A stretch of DNA of 63,913 nt, the filler included, from Reticulomyxa filosa (lineage: Eukaryota > Protista > Foraminifera), in assembly GCA_000512085.1 (NCBI GenBank). It is 19 parts of 19 records of this genome, joined end to end, with 100 filler letters (N's around TTAATTAATTAA, not from the genome) between each part and the next. Parts side by side here need not be neighbours in the genome. Positions count along the whole stretch, not along the records: positions 10,273 to 19,544 come from ASPP01017957.1; 18 more parts are not named here. One strand, given 5' to 3'. The translations under genes and the position numbers were made by a program. Below, piece by piece: positions 10,273 through 19,692 of the stretch. Every line of letters starts with the position of its first letter. The first letter of the stretch is position 1. The notes under the pieces are model-generated. The model was not told the origin of the DNA and did not search any database. It was given only the letters and a program-made list of their open reading frames with translations.

Positions 10273-11622
10273 TAAAAAAAAAATAAATAATAATAATAAT
10301 AAAAACAGTAGCAGAACTGACTCTTATCAAAGTCCCAGTCGCACAAATATTGATCTTGATATTTCGAGCCAGAATACAGCATAACATATTGAAACGACGA
10401 TTGATCGTCGCCACTGCTCACACGGGGCTTCAAAGAGTATCTTCCATTTTGGGCATAAATAGTAAAGTAGTCAAAGTTGGACTGACCGTTGCTATGCATA
10501 TGACAGTAGCTTTTCCAGTTTGTGGGACAAATCAGATCCACCTTGCTGTCTATATCTTGGCTGTCCAATTCATAGCTGTTCTTGCCATCGCATTCTATCG
10601 TCACATTGTTGTTTGCCGCCGAGGCATTCACAGTGGTATGAAGACAAGCTTCTTCGCCTACACAAAAAAAAAAAAAAGAGATCATCACAGGCAATCGACG
10701 CGTTTAATCCATCAGTTTTGTTTTGGGTTTTGACGTATACAGTTATTTTTTTCGTATGATTGAGGAATGTGTCCAATGCCATAGTAGTTATTACGTATAC
10801 ATTACATATTTATACATATATATAAATATGTATATTTATATATATGTATAAATATGTATATTTATATATATGTATAAATATACATATGTTATATACACAA
10901 ACCCGAACACTGAAGCAAAAATTTAGTCACGTTTTGCCGAACCTCCACAGTGCTTGATGCAAATACGTAATACACGTCAGACGAGGAACGAATTGCCTTT
11001 AACGCAAAATCATTGACATTTGACACTTTCCAATTGCTGCTGGTGCAACCTCCATCACCTATTGTGTACGTAAATACATATTAACGATCTTATACAATAT
11101 ACACACATACACAATCTCAAAAAAATATAAATATAAATATAAACCTTGGCAAGTCATGGTCACATTCTCAACGAAATTGAATGAGAAATCTAAATTCTCA
11201 CATGTAAATACTTGACTATGACATACAATATCTGCCACCTCAACGGAGGCAATATCAAATTGGCTGTCGTAACACGCGTTAGTGGCATAACAATCCATTT
11301 GGATCAGTCCGATTGATTGCAAGTGCATCTTCATACCACTGCACGCTCCTTCGTATCCGCAGTAAATCTTCAGAATGGTGATATCTGACGCGTACAACTC
11401 ACTGTTCTCACAGTCGTATGCTGTACTGTCACAACGGATTTCAACCGTATTTGCATCTTTTATCGTCACACTGTTCGATTGTAAACAACCTCCTCGGACC
11501 ACGTAGCCGTTGTTCCGATCTTCTTTGTAACCCGAGTCACACCCTTCAATTGTTCTTCCAAGAGCCAAGAACAATTTTGCCACGAGCAAAAATAGAAGGA
11601 GAGATAATTTATTCGACATCAT
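10273..11622 (-). CDS. Secreted/surface cysteine-repeat protein (spliced, 3' partial)
   Basis: Signal peptide 'MMSNKLSLLLFLLVAKLFLALG' followed by ~23-aa repeats with paired Cys ('LKIYCGYEGACSGMKMH', 'IQMDCYATNACYDSQFDI', 'DIVCHSQVFTCENLDF'). The repeats continue in exon ~10310-10660. Confidence 0.75.
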
Positions 11623-11863
11623 ATCACTTCAACAAAAACCTAATTAATTATTAGTCCCATTCAATTAACCAGAAGGAGCACACACACGGCTTTTGAACTG
11701 CTTGTCACATAATTTGTATTATGTGGAAGGTTTTTTTGAAAAAATCACCGATTGAAAATGGAGAGCAAAGCAGAACTTACTTTAGATGATTGTAATGTCG
11801 ATCGAGATGAAAAACATCGTAAAAAACTTTGTGTCAAGGGGTCAACAAAAAAAAAAAAAAAAA

Positions 11864-12450
11864 ATGCTAGCTGATGCTCGTCATGACCCTCCTGCAACAA
11901 AACAAATGGCGGGTAGTTCTCCCACTGGTTCAGAGAGCGAAGAGGGCTCTCAATTGTCGATATTAAGTGACTTGGACGTGGTATTGGCTCCGTTGCTCAA
12001 TGAACCGAACCTGGCAAGCTCAGTGTTGACCTCAAGTCCGTCCGCATCTCCCCGAAGTGGGAAAATGGATAAAAAGCAGGTTGGAGAAGCGGAAGCAGCG
12101 GAAAAAGGGAGCAAAGAAGGGACAGAAACGCTAGTGGCGATGACGAGACGATTGGAAGAACTAACAATAGTGGAGCAAACATTTGAGCAACAAATGAACA
12201 TATTGCAGCACAACAGTAAAGAATGTGTGCAGCATATCGAAAAGGAATTTTCCACGTTATTCGAAGAATTGAATGAGCGAAAGCAAATGCTACTCGACAA
12301 TGTCAATTGCACTACAAAATATAAAATGGATACTTTGAAAGAGCAATACAATGCACTTCATCATTACAAAATGAATTTGAATCAAGTCTTTTTGTGATCC
12401 ATTTCATTTTTATTTACATACGTATATATACGTATACATATATGCATATA

Positions 12451-12481
<31 letters not shown>

Positions 12482-13266
12482 GTGTATATATGTGATTGGC
12501 TCAAATCAAGCCAAATAAAATGACTAGCGTTTACGAACAAATAATTAAAGCTCTATTGTCAAGCCAATGATATGACTGCCAAAAGCCCTTCCTCCACTGC
12601 TTCACTTCAACAAGTGCTACACAGCGGCAATCACTTGTTGAAACAACGCGTCCATGCCACGCCCAATGTCACTGCTGTGGTCAAGCTTGCTTGGCCAAAT
12701 CAGCACATTTCCTTTGTATGTTTTTTTTTATATTATTATTATTTTTTTTTTTTTTTCTAATTGCGTGTCATGTTTGCTCTTGTTTGAAAACAGCTTGTCT
12801 CGGAACTGGGACAAATTGTCGATTACGACAAACCCAGGCCCCCGGTTGTGCATGCGAAGAGAATCGATCACTGCTGTGTTCAAGTGAGTTGTTTGTTCAT
12901 CTATGACTACATCAACAACAACAACAACAACAGCAAAACACTCCAAAACTATCAAATGTAATGCATGGTTCTGCAACAGATAGGCTGGCGAATTTTCGAC
13001 GAGGTAAACAAGGAGGATGAAAGTGACAGTGCGCATTACCACGATCATGGCCATGACGATGGCAATCAAGACACCCGATCTTGACAAAACAGCAAAAGCA
13101 AGACCTTCAAAGAAAAAAGAATGTGACGCAATATATTGACGTAAACAATTGGACGCAAGCAAACGAATTCAAGGTTGAATGGCGATTGGCAGTTGTGGCA
13201 AATGATGCAATTGCAACGGATATAAATAACAATAATAATACGTATAATAATAATAATAATAATAAT

Positions 13267-13297
<31 letters not shown>

Positions 13298-14420
13298 TAA
13301 TGATAATAACAAAAGCAATGAAAAAGTGAATCCAAATGATAACAGTACCACTATAGTAACAGATCAATTATTTGACACCCCAATGGCAACGTCGAATGTT
13401 CCGACCAAAGTACTTCGTGCACGCCGTTCTTCAACGTATGCAAGTTATGGCAGTTGGTTTGAAAGATTTTCCAAAGCGAGTTCTTCATCGCCACAGTTAC
13501 AATCACAGTCTCAATCGCAATCGCAATCGCAATCGCAGTCGCAGTTACAGTTTGATCTGCAAAACGACGAACAAAAAAATGTGAGCAATGGAATGTCTCA
13601 GGAATGGACAACGTCGGATTTGCAATGGAAAGAAAGTCAAGTATTATTGAATACATACGAATACGAAATCAACTCGTTGCATTATGACCAAAGTTATGAA
13701 ATTCGAGTAAGAGGGAGGAACCATGCCCAAAACAAGCAGCTTTCAGCACAAATGGATATTTGGAGTGATTATTCCAATCGAATCACCATTCAAACATTAC
13801 CTTTTCCAACGACAATTATGCACCCTTATGAATTGCACACATTAAATCAAATGGTCAAACAAAAATGTCTGACCAATCCGTACTTTGCAAATAAAAACTA
13901 TATTTCTAAGAATTTGGATAACTTTAAGCTTCATTTGTTGTACAGTGCCTCGAGAGACGGCTTCAACACACGTACTTTCCATCGCTTGTGCGACAATCAG
14001 GGACCTACACTTTGTGTCTTTCGCAGTGACTACAATCATGTCTTTGGGGGGTTCACTACGGTCTCATGGACGAGCCATGCAAAAGGCTGCTATCGCTCCG
14101 ATCCATATGCGTTTTTGTTTGTTTTGAGGGCCAGTGAGTCTGCCCAAAAAAAATGCCAACTTACTTGTCCAATGGTATTTGATATCGTCAAAGAAGAAAT
14201 TCGAAGTGCTGTTCATCATCACTCCTATTGGGGACCCATTTTTGGACGTGGGCACGATATATTTATCGCCAATCATGCCAACACCAACCAACACTCTTTT
14301 TGTCGCTTTCCATTCAGCTATTTTCAATATCACAAACGAGACAAGTCCAAACTTTTGAGTGGCTCCAAACACAACTTCCAACTGTTAGACATGGAAGTTT
14401 ACACTATTCGATTTGTTTGA
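11864..14420 (+). CDS. Coiled-coil / fibronectin-III / TLDc domain protein (spliced)
   Basis: C-terminal TLDc ('LLYSASRDGF...FHRLCDNQGPTL...FGGFT..W...GPIFGRGHDI...MEVY'). FN3 motifs ('FKVEWR', 'YEINSLHYDQSYEIRVRGRN', 'WSDYS'). N-terminal coiled coil 'IEKEFSTLFEELNERKQMLL'. Two apparent 1-bp frameshifts (~13080, ~13266). Confidence 0.85.
13225..13310 (+). repeat. (AAT)n microsatellite encoding poly-Asn
   Basis: Trinucleotide run inside the TLDc gene. Confidence 0.9.
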
Positions 14421-15144
14421 AATTATTACCAATGGTTAACAGTAACATAAAAAGAGGCCAGGCAACGAAAGAAAAGCCTTTTTTGATTTGTTGGTTTTTG
14501 GATGTATATTTTATTTTGATTTGCTTTCTTATTTCATTGTTAGTGGTCTTTTTTTTCCCCATTTTCTTATTCCATTAGTTATGTTAAATGTAAAGTGAGG
14601 TCAATGTTTTGCTCGTTTTGTGAATGCCAACGTAACTCGAAAAAATTTGTAGAATCTATTTTCTTTTTTTTCCTCTTTTTGCACAAATTAAAGCCAGAAA
14701 CAGGATGACCAACACAAACAAACGCAAAATTATTATGCTTTGTGGTTATTGATTTTAAGCCAAGCTTTTATTATTTTCTTTCTTTAAAAAAAAAATAAAA
14801 TTAATCAATATGAATCCTTATTTTGTTAGACACATTTAAAAAAACCATTGCATAACACTTGGTTATGTGTATGAATTGAAAAAGTGGATGCAATATTTCA
14901 TAGTTCATAAAAATTACGCTTTCTATAAAATTAAAAAATTTTTCTCAATGTTAATGAAAGAATTAAAAAAAACAACAACAAACAAACAAACAATGCAATT
15001 AAGAACGTCACAAAGAAAGAATACAGTTTTCATTTGTGTCATCAATTTCTCAAAAAAACATCCCTGCTCACAACAACACATTGGAACAGTGATTTCCAAT
15101 TGACAAATAAATACTACCCCTCCCCATCCCTTTCTTTGTCTTTT

Positions 15145-16346
15145 TCAGCGTTGATGCTTCTCAAAAATGAGTTTTGACACAGATATAACTGCAGTCAAAA
15201 AAACAATAATAAAGGTACGCATCAACAAAGTACTCAAATCACCATCATAAAACTTGGGGATTATGTCTTTTTGTGAAATAATGTTTTTAACATTGTCAAT
15301 AAAATCTAAGTTGGCCTCTTCGAGCACATATTTTGCTGCTTTGCCATAGCTATCGCTTCGCTCGTTTCTTGTTCCTTGTTCAAAAGAGTCTTTTTCAATT
15401 TCAGTGTCGTCTTTGTTTTTTGCTTGCTCATTTTTTTTCATATCATCGACACATTCGATTTCAAACTCAGTTTCTTTTTTTTCGGGCTTAGCTTGTAGCA
15501 TTACTCTTTTTTTGGGCATTATTATCGTGGATTTTCGTCGTTGAACAAAAGAGGCTATTGTCTTGGTGGTTTGTCTCATCGTTTTCATCGTTAAACGACA
15601 GTTCAAAAAGAAACGTTGCTCGGCAATAAAGCGTTCTTGAATTTGCTGAATATTCCGAAGTTCTTGCGCACCAGACCAAACGCGAATCAAACTTACCAAA
15701 AATATCAGCCACAAAAAACCGATTCCATTCCACAAGATACTTTTATATGCCGGTCCAGATATAAAATACACTCGATAAAACATAAAAGCACTAAAAAACA
15801 GCGACACCATTACTAACCATAGTGTTGGTGGTTCTTGCTTGGTAAACAACAGGCTGCCTACAAGTCAATTGGATCATTGTTATTATGTATTTATTTATTT
15901 TTGCAGTACGTATTGTATTTTGTCAAAAAATCATGTTAATGTATATGTAAATATATATTTATATATACGCATATGTACACGTACATATATTATTTTTTAC
16001 ACACCGTCGGCAGCTAAAAAAGAACGTACTTCAAGCCATCCCAGTGCATTGGAATATCGCTTCAGTGATAAAAACAAGTTACCAAATTGGCCGCGAATGT
16101 TTCTTCGTCGTGTCAACAAATAGGTCAAATCGCCCATGTAGGTTTTATACGTGTTAAAGTTGACAACGTACTGTCCTTCAATTGTCCGCAGCAAGATTTG
16201 AACCAAGATGAAGTTCGTGATAATGGCAGATATACCAACATCTGCATACTTTGAGTAGATGAAGGACTGCCCTAATATCACGCGTGTAATCCCTGGCAAT
16301 AACGCATATAATATTGCAACCAATGCAATCGTCAATTTTGTCCTTC

Positions 16347-16383
<37 letters not shown>

Positions 16384-18579
16384 TTGCTTTACAAGAGGTC
16401 TTCCAAAAAGAGTGGTACATACAGCACGTATACGTACCCAGCAAAAAAAAAAAAAAAAAAAAAAAGTAGAAAGAGAGAAGAAGGGCTCACTTGAAATCGG
16501 CTTTGATCTTAATTTGGCCCTTTCGTAGGCACGCAGAAACTCAGCGGCGGATAACTTGAACTCGTAGTATTCACCAAAGTACAATTGAATGTGGCGAAGC
16601 TTGTGCCAAGGGTCCAAAGGTGGGTCAATCAACACGTCGTAACTGATCCAAACGCTAAACAAAACCCAAAAGACGATATACAAACAAAAGGGCCCAGCTG
16701 TTTCGGTGACCGAAACTTCGGAGTTATAATAAACCACGGCAGAGGCATAATACAAGTGGAACAAGAGCAGACAATACAACGCGCTGGCAATGACGAACAG
16801 GATGCATCGTTCCACCAACTGTCCCCGCGATTGGTTTAAAAACCAGCGATAGTTACGAACAAACGCAGGTTGTTTTGCTTTGTCATCGTCGCTCTCTGGT
16901 GCATATTTTTCTTTGCGACCAACGATTAGCCCCAGCAAGTCATATGATATTGCCTCAGGACGAGTGTAATCCAAATCACGAGGATATTTGATCCACAATT
17001 CTTCGTAAGATCTGTCAAAGTTTATTTGTTTATTGGTTGATTGGTCCTTTGGCTCTTTTTTTTTTTTTTTTTTGTTAAGAACTTTTTTTAAAAAAGATGG
17101 AGGGGGGGGAAGGATTAAAACGTATACGTAAAGAGAGAGAGAAAGAGAGAGATTGTATGAACAATAAAATAAACTTGTCATAAGAAAAGGAACAAAATGC
17201 GATCAATTGCCATAACAGCCGCAACGGAAGTATCATCCCGTACATAAGCGATGTGATAAGTATGTCCCAGCGAAACTGCTTGTTGATCCGAAATTCTTTT
17301 AGTGCTAACACTGGCAACGATATTTTGTCCAAAGGGACATCTTCTTTGGAAACTTGGTCGAGACGCACTTGTGGCTGCAGCGTCAATCTTTCCTCCACTT
17401 CCATTTCTTTTGCAAACAGACGCTTTTCAAAATACCCCCGCAATTCTGTCCATACATCCACCGCACTACCTCGTGAGGGCTGTGCCGACGCGTTTCTCTT
17501 TGTGTCCGTAATGCCACCCATCCCCAACGATATTTCATTTTGTCGCTTTATCAGCTGCGCAAAGCAATCTTTCACTGTCAGCCGATTTACCGCCGTTACT
17601 TCGGCATATCCAAAGTGATATTTTTCAACGTACTGTTTTACTGTGTTCCTTTGGGCTTCCTTCGTTATAACATGAAAGACAACGTTATAAGAAAAACAAA
17701 CAAATAAGCCTTTTTTTTTTTATTATTGTTATTGTCATTATTATTATTATTATTATTGTTTAATTTACTTTTTTTTTTTTTTTGGACATTAATTTAGACT
17801 AATAACCTCACTATTTTTGGGATTGAGCCTCCCCTTTTTTTTCTGGCAAGAAATTTTTTTTTTGACCATAAATTTTTTTTTTTTTTTTTTTTTTTTTTGC
17901 CAAGGGTGCAAGATTTTTTTGCTTTTTTTTTTTTTTGGAAAGGCAGTAGCAGATATCACACAAAACATATTGATTTGGTGGGAATTCGTCAATTCGAGTA
18001 GCTGTAATAACAATTGGCAGAGAGGCGAGATTGCCATTGGTTGACTTGAGCAATTTGTCAATGTAATGCAGTGTGAAGTTCCAAGATTTGAAAAAATATT
18101 CAGGGCCGTATGCAATCACAAACAAAAATGCATCTCGTGTACGTATCCATGAGTCTTGCAACGAGGCAAATTCTTCTTGTCCAGATGTGTCCAGTATGTC
18201 TAATAATAGATTCTGATCTTCCAATGTAAATATTTTGCGGTATGAGTCTGTGGATTGAAAGAAGGGAGTAGATTGACAGAAAAGGGAGGGAGACAAGGGA
18301 TGCAATGGAGGAGGAAGGAAAAAAAAAAAAAAGCTTTATTTGTTTTTGAACGATGCTATTTACTTGTTTTTTCTCTTATTTTTTTTCTCTCTCTTCCTCT
18401 CTCTACTACTACTATTTATCATTTCCTTCAATGGTGGGATCGTGCTGTTCTTGAAATACATCATGGACAAATTGATTGATAATTGAAGTTTTGCCGACTC
18501 CAAATGAACCAAAAACACCAACATAAAAATCAGGCTCACTTTCTCGTGGCTGAAATTGAGACAAAGAATGAGCAGCCAT
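15145..18579 (-). CDS. Ras-family small GTPase fused to a PHTF-like multi-pass membrane (7TM ion-channel superfamily) domain
   Basis: Exon 1 (18579-18426): GSFGVGKT and HDPTIE. Exon 2 (from 18247): DSYRK, DTSGQEEF, TRID. Exon 3 (from 17659): YAEVTA, VKDCFAQLIK, then runs without a stop into hydrophobic segments. Later exons (ORFs 15997-17181, 15145-15849) join by in-phase GT-AG introns and carry 'GPFCLYIVFW', 'YALLPGITRV', 'NALGWLEVRSFL' and 'PKFYDGDLSTLLMRTFIIVFLTAVISV'. Confidence 0.8.
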
Positions 18580-19080
18580 CTTTGCTTATTTTATTATTAT
18601 TGATTTTTTTTCTCCTTGTCTGTGCAAGCTGTCTTTTGCTTTGACAAAAAGACTGAGCAAATTATCAATTCCTCTTAGTTGATAAAAAAACTGGTATAAT
18701 CAAGTTCAAATCAAACCCAACTTGACTAAAGTCTATTGTTGAAATGATTTATCATGAGAATTTTTTTGGGTGTTGGTATGTGGCTTCAACAAAAATTTCT
18801 AGGAAGTTTGGAAAAAATTTTTGAAGTCAAGAGAGAAGACTGTTTGGAGTAGATCGTTCAAATCGTAAATGAGATTAGATTTGACATTGCCAATAAAAAT
18901 ATTTTCTTGCTACAACAAGAACAATTTTAAGTTTTGGAACACAAGACTAAACAATTGGAAAAGTTTAAAAAAAGAACAATAAGACTTAGTTTATTTACTC
19001 CTTTTTTTCTCCTTGCTGGCCTAAGTTTTTTAACTCTTGCCGTTCTCGTGGTCTTTCTGATTGGCAATTTTTTCGGTGAC

Positions 19081-19527
19081 ATGTTCATAAGCATATTAAA
19101 CGAACTACCTAGTCATAATGTGTATGAAATGCCAACTCAACATATTAAAAAGTTGTCCTTAGAACGGCCCAGTGGTACTATACAAGGTGTACCGTTGCCG
19201 TACGTAGTCCCAACACAAATTCGTCACCACGCGAGCAGACCAAACGTGGTGTATGGCCATTTGAGTGGAGGTGGTCAAGTGTATCCACAAGTGGTGTTTA
19301 GAACAAGTGACAGCAACTACACGTGTCCAACATATAACAATGGTAAAGTCAACACGTCCGGACATGTAAAGCCACTGCTAACGACGACGCAAACGAAGGA
19401 ACAAAAGAGAGATCACACATTAGAAAACAGGAATTATGGTCAAGTGCCATTGTGTAGAGAATCAGACAATGGCATGACAATTAAATCGACTACCGTGACT
19501 GTATCACAAGCCCAGAACTCAGGCCTA
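19081..19527 (+). CDS. Hypothetical protein N-terminus (3' partial), divergent from the Ras-fusion gene
   Basis: Open frame 18934-19596 with protein-like composition from MFISIL/MPTQ onward. No family recognised. Confidence 0.45.
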
Positions 19528-19692
19528 TGTACGTGTATGTTTTTNNNNNNNNNNNNNNNNNNNNNNNNNNNNNNNNNNNNNNNNNNNNTTAATTAATTAA
19601 NNNNNNNNNNNNNNNNNNNNNNNNNNNNNNNNNNNNNNNNNNNNTTGTGGTTCTTTTTTTTTTTAAAATGAAAGGTTAAAAAAAAAAAAAAA

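Follow-up and report, generated by a model that had tools for sequence, protein, structure and literature searches.

Can a small GTPase and a channel-type membrane domain be parts of one protein? The question is raised by a locus of the foraminiferan Reticulomyxa filosa (GenBank assembly GCA_000512085.1), where a sequence-only reading had proposed a Ras GTPase fused to a PHTF-like seven-transmembrane ion channel (7TMIC) domain. The locus lies in a window of 63,913 nucleotides (nt), the whole stretch analyzed, in which parts of 19 records of the genome are joined end to end; the piece examined here (10273-19544, from ASPP01017957.1) is AT-rich eukaryotic DNA with abundant homopolymer runs. We find that the locus is one gene, expressed as a single polypeptide of about 830 amino acids (aa), with an N-terminal Ras-subfamily G domain (residues ~1-190) that has a canonical Ras effector loop and no lipidation box. 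For the membrane domain of a 40%-identical homolog, modelling predicts with high confidence the 7TMIC fold of insect odorant receptor (OR) and gustatory receptor (GR) channels. Ras and a predicted 7TMIC fold in one protein is a new architecture built from known kinds.

A single gene joins a Ras-type G domain to a membrane domain

The gene was read on the minus strand, and its exons were joined with a local script. An ATG at 18579 opens a frame of six exons (Table 1), which together comprise 2496 nt, or 831 codons plus a stop, with zero internal stops. All of the Ras motifs quoted in the sequence-only reading were found in place: GSFGVGKT, HDPTIE/DSYRK (split by intron 1), DTSGQEEF, TRID, EVTA, and VKDCFAQLIK. 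Its call of a Ras-type G domain agrees with Pfam Ras (PF00071), which passes its gathering cut-off of 21.6 bits on exons 1 and 2 separately, and with the retention of G1 GxxxxGK[ST], the switch I Thr35, and G3 DxxGQ; homologs score 83-165 bits with the same profile. The nearest solved sequences to the G domain are those of K-, N-, and H-Ras (E 3e-21 with the paralog, 3.5e-10 with exon 2 alone).

The effector loop DPTIEDSYRK and the segment DTSGQEEF are close to Ras, and we take them to correspond to H-Ras residues 33-42 and 57-64. With H/K/N-Ras and Rap the window protein shares DPTIEDSYRK, DTxGQEE with Gln61, and GxxxxGK[ST], and it differs from them in its polytopic membrane extension, the missing hypervariable region, and several residues of the nucleotide-binding motifs. 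Position 12 is Phe rather than Gly, and G4 and G5 read TRID and TAV in place of NKxD and SAK, with the Asp alone retained; this combination suggests slow hydrolysis and altered nucleotide handling. Across the family, G4/G5 range from NKCD/SAK to TCAD/SSF. Nearly all members keep GxxxxGK[ST], Thr35, and the G4 Asp, and positions 12/13, Gln61, NKxD, and SAK are variable.

A hypervariable region with a CAAX lipidation box was not found after helix 5; the frame continues instead for ~640 residues into the membrane domain. From 17659, a single reading frame runs through exon 3 from G5 and helix 5 across the linker into the first hydrophobic segment, free of CAAX and stop as originally described, and the junction between the Ras and membrane parts therefore depends on no splice. 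The membrane motifs quoted for the remaining exons were likewise all located (ETAGPFCL, ALLPGITR, NALGWLEVRSFL, and the C-terminal IPKFY...FLTAVIS helix). The introns had been described as in-phase and GT-AG; this holds for introns 2-5, and not for intron 1, which is GA...AG. Intron 4 is stop-free and in frame, such that a plain open reading frame (ORF) finder fuses exons 4 and 5 into a 394-aa ORF (15997-17181) with internal poly-F and poly-K; it is spliced out in the transcript contig described below.

Public sequencing runs were searched for the stretch, and one run (X1), the RNA label of which is a guess, matched part of it, whereas RNA from the organism of the window itself was not found; the matching contig was compared over 15000-18750. 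This single contig of 2739 nt, ~92% identical to the window, lies on six of six exons and omits all five introns. The joints across introns 1, 2, and 5 are directly reported, at the predicted borders; those across introns 3 and 4 were deduced from adjacent or near-adjacent record coordinates, and the 23-letter bridge at intron 4 has the length predicted. As an intron-less copy with exact exon borders, the contig is read as spliced mRNA despite the guessed label of the run. A break in the transcript between the Ras part and the membrane part would have told against the fusion, and none was found: one spliced contig spans the six exons, and the junction lies within a single one of them. In exon 6, the 36 listed differences between window and contig comprise 25 synonymous and 11 non-synonymous changes, which indicates that both copies evolved under purifying selection.

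The contig also departs from the window in two blocks. At 15403-15520, within intracellular loop 3 (IL3), 116 nt are swapped for 119 unrelated letters, and in the 5' untranslated region (UTR), at 18579-18708, 128 nt are skipped and 28 other letters stand instead. Both may be fast-evolving regions, and the 5' one may be a 5'-UTR intron.

A predicted 7TMIC fold in a family whose named members are foraminiferal

The fold of the membrane domain was predicted with AlphaFold2 on a Nonionella homolog, P0004 (residues 224-842, ~40% identical to the window), using a 62-row alignment that included the window exons. The model has a mean pLDDT (predicted local distance difference test) of 81.9 and a pTM (predicted template modelling score) of 0.78, with disorder limited to the variable loop. 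In a Foldseek search of PDB, places 1-17 were all occupied by insect OR, Orco, or GR chains (best E 6.8e-3, probability 0.99), so that on this homolog model the proposed 7TMIC fold was recovered. A shape search of the ESM Atlas with the membrane model gave TM-scores ≤ 0.24, to unrelated bacterial clusters.

The 7TMIC criteria of Himmel et al. (bioRxiv 10.1101/2023.08.30.555482) served as a checklist. The P0004 model has seven transmembrane (TM) helices with OR-like packing. TM4, TM5, and TM6 are 42, 49, and 47 residues long (model helices 260-301, 342-390, and 399-445) and form the long cytoplasmic anchor, and TM7 is split, with model helices 547-566 and 569-580, a turn at 581-591, and helix 592-618 at the extreme C-terminus. 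The outer loops are short, with median lengths for extracellular loops EL1, EL2, and EL3 of 16, 17, and 8 aa vs. 51 aa for IL1 and about 150 aa for IL3. Charges follow the same division: in 12 members the median number of Lys plus Arg is 0 in EL1, 2 in EL2, 0 in EL3, and 0 at the C-terminus vs. 8 in IL1, 9 in IL2, and 19 in IL3, with 5 and 7 at the two flanks of the segment preceding TM1 (TM0). This positive-inside bias points to an N-in/C-out orientation, as does the N-terminal Ras, presumably a cytosolic domain.

Hydropathy gives eight hydrophobic segments, an identical set in all long members. In the first (model 27-38 and 40-53; window 17269-17189), a conserved Pro kinks the helix, and Lys and Arg are abundant on both sides; structural alignments start after this segment, at model residues 67-84. 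We read this kinked hairpin, which precedes TM1 in the model, as a candidate for the re-entrant TM0 and not as an eighth membrane pass; if it is re-entrant, the Ras domain and the 7TMIC N-terminus remain cytoplasmic.

At the level of sequence, Pfam assigned the window membrane exons and ten long homologs to no named family at E ≤ 10, and 7tm_6, 7tm_7, Trehalose_recp, and DUF3537 gave no match in family members or the ten long homologs even at E ≤ 1-10. The family profile found nothing meaningful among PDB sequences. Language-model feature neighbours, which are to be read as leads only, are DUF3537, 7tm_7, and Trehalose_recp clusters (scores 0.85-0.93). The family is thus without detectable sequence similarity to insect OR/Orco/GR (7TMIC Class A; PDB 8z9z, 8vc1, 8jm9, 7lic, and 6c70), and adds to their plan an N-terminal Ras domain, a conserved strand and hydrophobic hairpin before TM1, predicted IL1 beta-strands, and a variable IL3 of ~150 aa.

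A linker of roughly 60 residues, poorly conserved, joins the G domain to the membrane domain of about 550 residues. In the full-length P0004 model (pLDDT 80.5, pTM 0.66) the G domain and the membrane domain are each confident and the linker is disordered; because pTM drops to 0.66, no docking pose of the G domain is claimed. A complex prediction of the P0004 G domain (1-180) with the membrane domain (224-842), GTP, and Mg, run without family alignments, scored 0.00 and counts neither way. Most members (P0004, P0008, P0038, P0039, P0009, P0011, P0022, and P0048; alignment A5 columns ~330-345) have cysteines clustered as CxCC or CxCxC some 30 residues beyond helix 5; the window protein has no such cluster. 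Where present, the cluster is a plausible palmitoylation site through which the Ras domain would be fastened to the membrane.

An exhaustive HMMER scan of 1.84e9 (1.84 billion) representatives, with the stop-free stretch covering exon 4, intron 4, and exon 5 as query, yielded 37 proteins, with family E-values from 5.5e-76 to 1e-31. The membrane-domain profile, run against 5.8e9 proteins, retrieved 29 family members and none further at E ≤ 10. Members with an organism given in the source come from R. filosa, Nonionella stella, Elphidium margaritaceum, and Ammonia sp., and the rest are environmental contigs. Pfam Ras was found at the N-terminus of 9 of the 10 longest first-round homologs (E 1e-23 to 1e-48), the tenth being an N-terminally truncated fragment that begins inside helix 5, and PF00071 was flagged in all further long members from the profile search. 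Every sufficiently complete homolog found therefore has an N-terminal Ras domain, and the two-domain architecture, which the sequence-only reading had suggested seeking in other foraminiferans, recurs in at least four genera (Reticulomyxa, Nonionella, Elphidium, and Ammonia). Several species have several paralogs each; this is a multigene family, and its members with a named source are all foraminiferal.

Conservation within the family peaks in the cytoplasmic half of TM5 (N.LGWLE.R, the strongest peak and part of the anchor) and in TM2 (GP..L....W), with further peaks in the pre-TM1 linker (D.LG...GR....DP) and the turn between TM7a and TM7b (K.I.P..F). The TM5, TM2, and 7a-7b peaks coincide with the third, first, and last of the four membrane motifs originally singled out. 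Strongest conservation in the anchor is as reported for 7TMICs (bioRxiv 10.1101/2023.08.30.555482).

The closest database entries are the partial R. filosa models ETO27440.1 (72% aa identity) and ETO16461.1 (74%). At the DNA level, the ETO27440.1 locus is 68-73% identical to the window, and is thus a paralog or from another species. Public R. filosa gene models of the family are faulty. ETO27440.1 reads TIEGERNSYRK, with exon 1 extended into the intron, and its model stops at the contig edge; ETO19181.1 (P0003) has poly-F and poly-K around TM0, typical of intron read-through. These faults were noted at R. filosa ASPP01007254.1 (L001 1667-3512) and in P0003. P0021 (Ammonia sp., 1173 aa) has an additional N-terminal extension of ~300 residues (1-300) ahead of the Ras domain, part of which is EF-hand-like by eye; Pfam at E ≤ 0.01 gave nothing there.

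Features of the locus and its neighbourhood

Table 1. Exons and introns of the Ras-7TMIC gene, in window coordinates and in the order of transcription.
Feature	Coordinates	Strand	Content	Evidence
Exon 1	18426..18579	-	start codon 18579; P-loop G1 GSFGVGKT; switch I to HDPTIE	translation; Pfam Ras 26.3 bits, E 6e-6; transcript contig record 99-252, 3 differences
Intron 1	18248..18425	-	phase 1, non-canonical GA...AG	X1 contig joint 18247/18426, ends CT..TC on + strand
Exon 2	17967..18247	-	DSYRK; G3 DTSGQEEF; G4 variant TRID	Pfam Ras 34.5 bits, E 1.9e-8; phmmer to K/N-Ras chains, E 3.5e-10
Intron 2	17660..17966	-	GT-AG, phase 0	X1 contig joint 17658/17966 (cut +1)
Exon 3	17175..17659	-	G5 (EVTAV); helix 5; ~60-aa linker; conserved strand PVLALKEFRI; kinked hydrophobic hairpin TM0 (17269-17189)	translation; homolog alignment; model-helix mapping; contig piece 17175-17658
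Intron 3	17012..17174	-	GT-AG, phase 2	contig record positions 1018 and 1019 adjacent across intron
Exon 4	16491..17011	-	conserved linker D.LG..VGR...PE / WFL.Q; TM1 (16827-16753); EL1; TM2 (16695-16642, E..GP..L...W); IL1 with predicted beta-strands	family matches E 5.5e-76 to 1e-31
Intron 4	16347..16490	-	GT-AG; rich in poly-T/poly-A; in frame without stops; absent from transcript	pieces 16507 and 16339 separated by exactly 23 contig letters, as expected from 16 nt of exon 4 + 7 nt of exon 5
Exon 5	16005..16346	-	TM3 (16344-16273, Y..LPG..R); EL2; long TM4 (16245-16120); IL2; cytoplasmic start of TM5 (16056-16006, N.LGWLE.RSFL, most conserved stretch of the family)	translation; helix mapping; conservation
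Intron 5	15858..16004	-	GT-AG, phase 1	X1 contig joint 15856/16004 (cut +1)
Exon 6	15145..15857	-	membrane half of TM5 (15855-15763); EL3; long TM6 (15738-15598); variable charged IL3 (about 15522-15346); TM7a (15324-15271); conserved K.I.P..F turn; TM7b (15237-15157); stop TGA 15147-15145	translation; helix mapping

On the plus strand, the neighbouring gene at 13326-14417 encodes a TLDc domain (Pfam TLD, E 1.1e-20) with an SQ-repeat before the domain. This gene probably has upstream exons around 11786-12394 (+), and a coiled-coil-like upstream ORF may belong to the same multi-exon gene. The minus-strand ORFs at 11062-11622 and 10275-10694 are both cysteine-rich, the first with a signal-peptide-like start; neither has a Pfam match, and no significant similarity was found between them. 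They may encode secreted proteins restricted to the lineage, or may not be genes.

How the fusion may work, and what it means

The explanation that we favour, and consider fairly probable, is that this is a one-gene Ras-7TMIC fusion in which the tethered Ras couples receptor or channel state to Ras signalling or tunes gating. The membrane domain would replace the CAAX anchor and would probably assemble like other 7TMICs, as a tetrameric, ligand-gated cation channel, and a tetramer would hold four Ras switches at the cytoplasmic face. Given its Ras-like effector loop, the G domain has most likely kept its interactions with guanine nucleotide exchange factors, GTPase-activating proteins, and effectors of the Ras type. 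The unit could work in either direction: the state of the receptor or channel could feed into local Ras signalling, or nucleotide state could tune gating. We infer channel activity, tetramerization, and GTPase-channel coupling for the fusion. A stronger form, which we regard as a tentative possibility, is a single-polypeptide ionotropic and metabotropic receptor evolved in Foraminifera, that is, a ligand-gated 7TMIC channel whose gating sets, or is set by, the GTP/GDP state of its own Ras domain.

Several points weigh against the favoured explanation. The fold was predicted on a homolog and not on the spliced protein of the window itself, and there is no sequence-level link between the family and any OR, GR, or PHTF. 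The channel function of the family is one that we infer, and most non-insect 7TMICs (PHTF, DUF3537) are without proven channel activity; TM7b, the pore helix in ORs, is hydrophobic here, yet poorly conserved in sequence. In the full-length model the G domain has no confident placement, given the pTM and the disordered linker. The transcript contig comes from a ~92%-identical relative or paralog, in a run whose RNA nature is guessed, and the GA donor of intron 1 leaves the splicing of the window's own copy unproven.

Of the rival explanations, the one that survives best, although we think it unlikely, holds that the protein is a membrane-anchored Ras with a non-conducting scaffold of 7TMIC fold, which positions or orients Ras (e.g., at the endoplasmic reticulum, like PHTF1) or senses lipids or partners, with no channel. 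PHTF has the same fold, is localized to the endoplasmic reticulum, and has no known channel activity (PMC9998090), and in the present family it is the cytoplasmic elements that are most conserved, not TM7b; the linker cysteines of most members would also suggest extra membrane tethering of the G domain. For anchoring, however, a single TM helix or a lipid would suffice, and the domain here is 550 aa long, has a conserved anchor and a split TM7, and keeps its seven helices under purifying selection, all of which argues for a function of its own.

It is improbable, in our assessment, that the membrane domain is specifically a divergent ortholog of PHTF (Class-B 7TMIC) to which a Ras domain was added. 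At E ≤ 1, the Pfam family matched by most members is PF12129 (PHTF1-2_N), with matches in 6 of 62 members, which are not independent, and a best E of 0.02 (15 bits vs. a cut-off of 25). The matches always place profile positions 87-147 on TM1-EL1-TM2 of the family, including the E..GP..L motif, and these positions would cover TM1-TM2 of PHTF itself, judging from the published topology (PMC9998090). Because PHTF was named before the search, the matches are more than noise; for one pre-named family, such a match is far rarer than the library-wide E-value implies. All of them nevertheless fall below the cut-off, and PF12129 gave no match in the window exons or the ten longest members. All 12 long members have an IL1 of about 51 aa, as against ~300 aa in PHTF, the long loop here being IL3 (between TM6 and TM7a), and the PHTF N-terminal region was not found above threshold. 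Neither the HMMER scan nor the membrane-profile search returned a non-family match, PHTF included, with E-values scaled to billions of sequences, and the language-model neighbours are DUF3537, GR, and Tmp39 rather than PHTF. Compared with PHTF1, PHTF2, and Phtf, which are Class-B 7TMIC candidates of pan-eukaryotic distribution (PMC9998090), the family thus has a Ras N-terminus, a short IL1, and a long IL3, and is not pan-eukaryotic. Of the proposed PHTF-like channel domain, then, the 7TMIC fold stands, as predicted on the homolog, whereas PHTF membership is weakly backed and not established; we file the domain as 7TMIC-fold and assign it to none of the classes.

A more remote alternative concerns the window copy alone, which might be a recently disabled pseudogene: a GT-to-GA change at the intron 1 donor would block splicing and end the frame after 55 codons (stop after TIEGNDK), leaving the protein to be made only by paralogs or relatives. 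The donor reads GAAG/GAAATG here vs. GAAG/GTGAAAG at the same phase-1 intron of an R. filosa paralog (ASPP01007254.1, L001 1838-1917), and the sole transcript evidence comes from the ~92%-identical sequence. Yet there is no other lesion across 2.5 kb of coding sequence, the synonymous changes outnumber the non-synonymous ones, and the acceptor and pyrimidine tract of intron 1 are intact. GA donors serve at low frequency in some eukaryotes; here the GA may mark a genuine non-canonical donor, a mutation that disables the copy, or an assembly error at one base. That neighbouring Ras and membrane-protein genes, or a chimeric assembly, were read as one is effectively refuted, even though foraminiferan contigs are short and repeat-rich and public models faulty (ETO27440.1 truncated and mis-spliced, ETO19181.1 read through introns), as the junction lies within one exon, one transcript contig spans everything, and the same architecture occurs in independent Nonionella, Elphidium, and Ammonia transcriptomes as well as in the R. 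filosa genome.

The sequence-only reading knew of no described protein with a Ras-7TM architecture, and our literature search agreed, finding no report that combines a 7TMIC with a GTPase, or Reticulomyxa with DUF3537. The supplements of two 7TMIC papers contain no Reticulomyxa entry and neither UniProt X6MZC2 nor X6MS27, and database labels of family entries read "hypothetical protein" or "ras family small GTPase, partial". The sole described fusion of a 7TMIC to a distinct cytoplasmic domain in a protist is trypanosome GRL1, with WD40 repeats (PMC9998090); it resembles the present family in kind, but has a WD40 propeller, belongs to another lineage, and shows no sequence relation that we could see. 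For a G domain, two functional analogies can be drawn, and no more than functional ones. Bacterial FeoB, an Fe2+ transporter, has an N-terminal G domain covalently coupled to a polytopic transport domain, but its G-domain family and membrane fold are unrelated to those of the fusion, and Pfam FeoB had no match in the window exons or the ten long homologs. RGK GTPases (Rem/Rad/Gem) regulate CaV channels in trans, as separate polypeptides. We know of no eukaryotic precedent for Ras hard-wired to a polytopic membrane protein, FeoB being the nearest analogy.

In the 7TMIC superfamily (insect OR/GR, plant DUF3537, PHTF, and protist GRLs), known function is limited to the insect members. A conserved, expressed Ras fusion with an intact effector loop tells what the cytoplasmic face talks to, and offers an entry point to non-insect 7TMIC function; it also bears on the long-running argument over the coupling of OR-type channels to G-protein signalling. 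The hybrid receptor, if true, would provide a first example from nature of a GTPase switch wired to the odorant-receptor fold. For small-GTPase biology, the fusion presents a Ras that does without a lipid anchor and is covalently tied to a polytopic membrane protein. For Foraminifera, the multigene family is a candidate sensory system, which could steer reticulopodial behaviour in these giant single cells.

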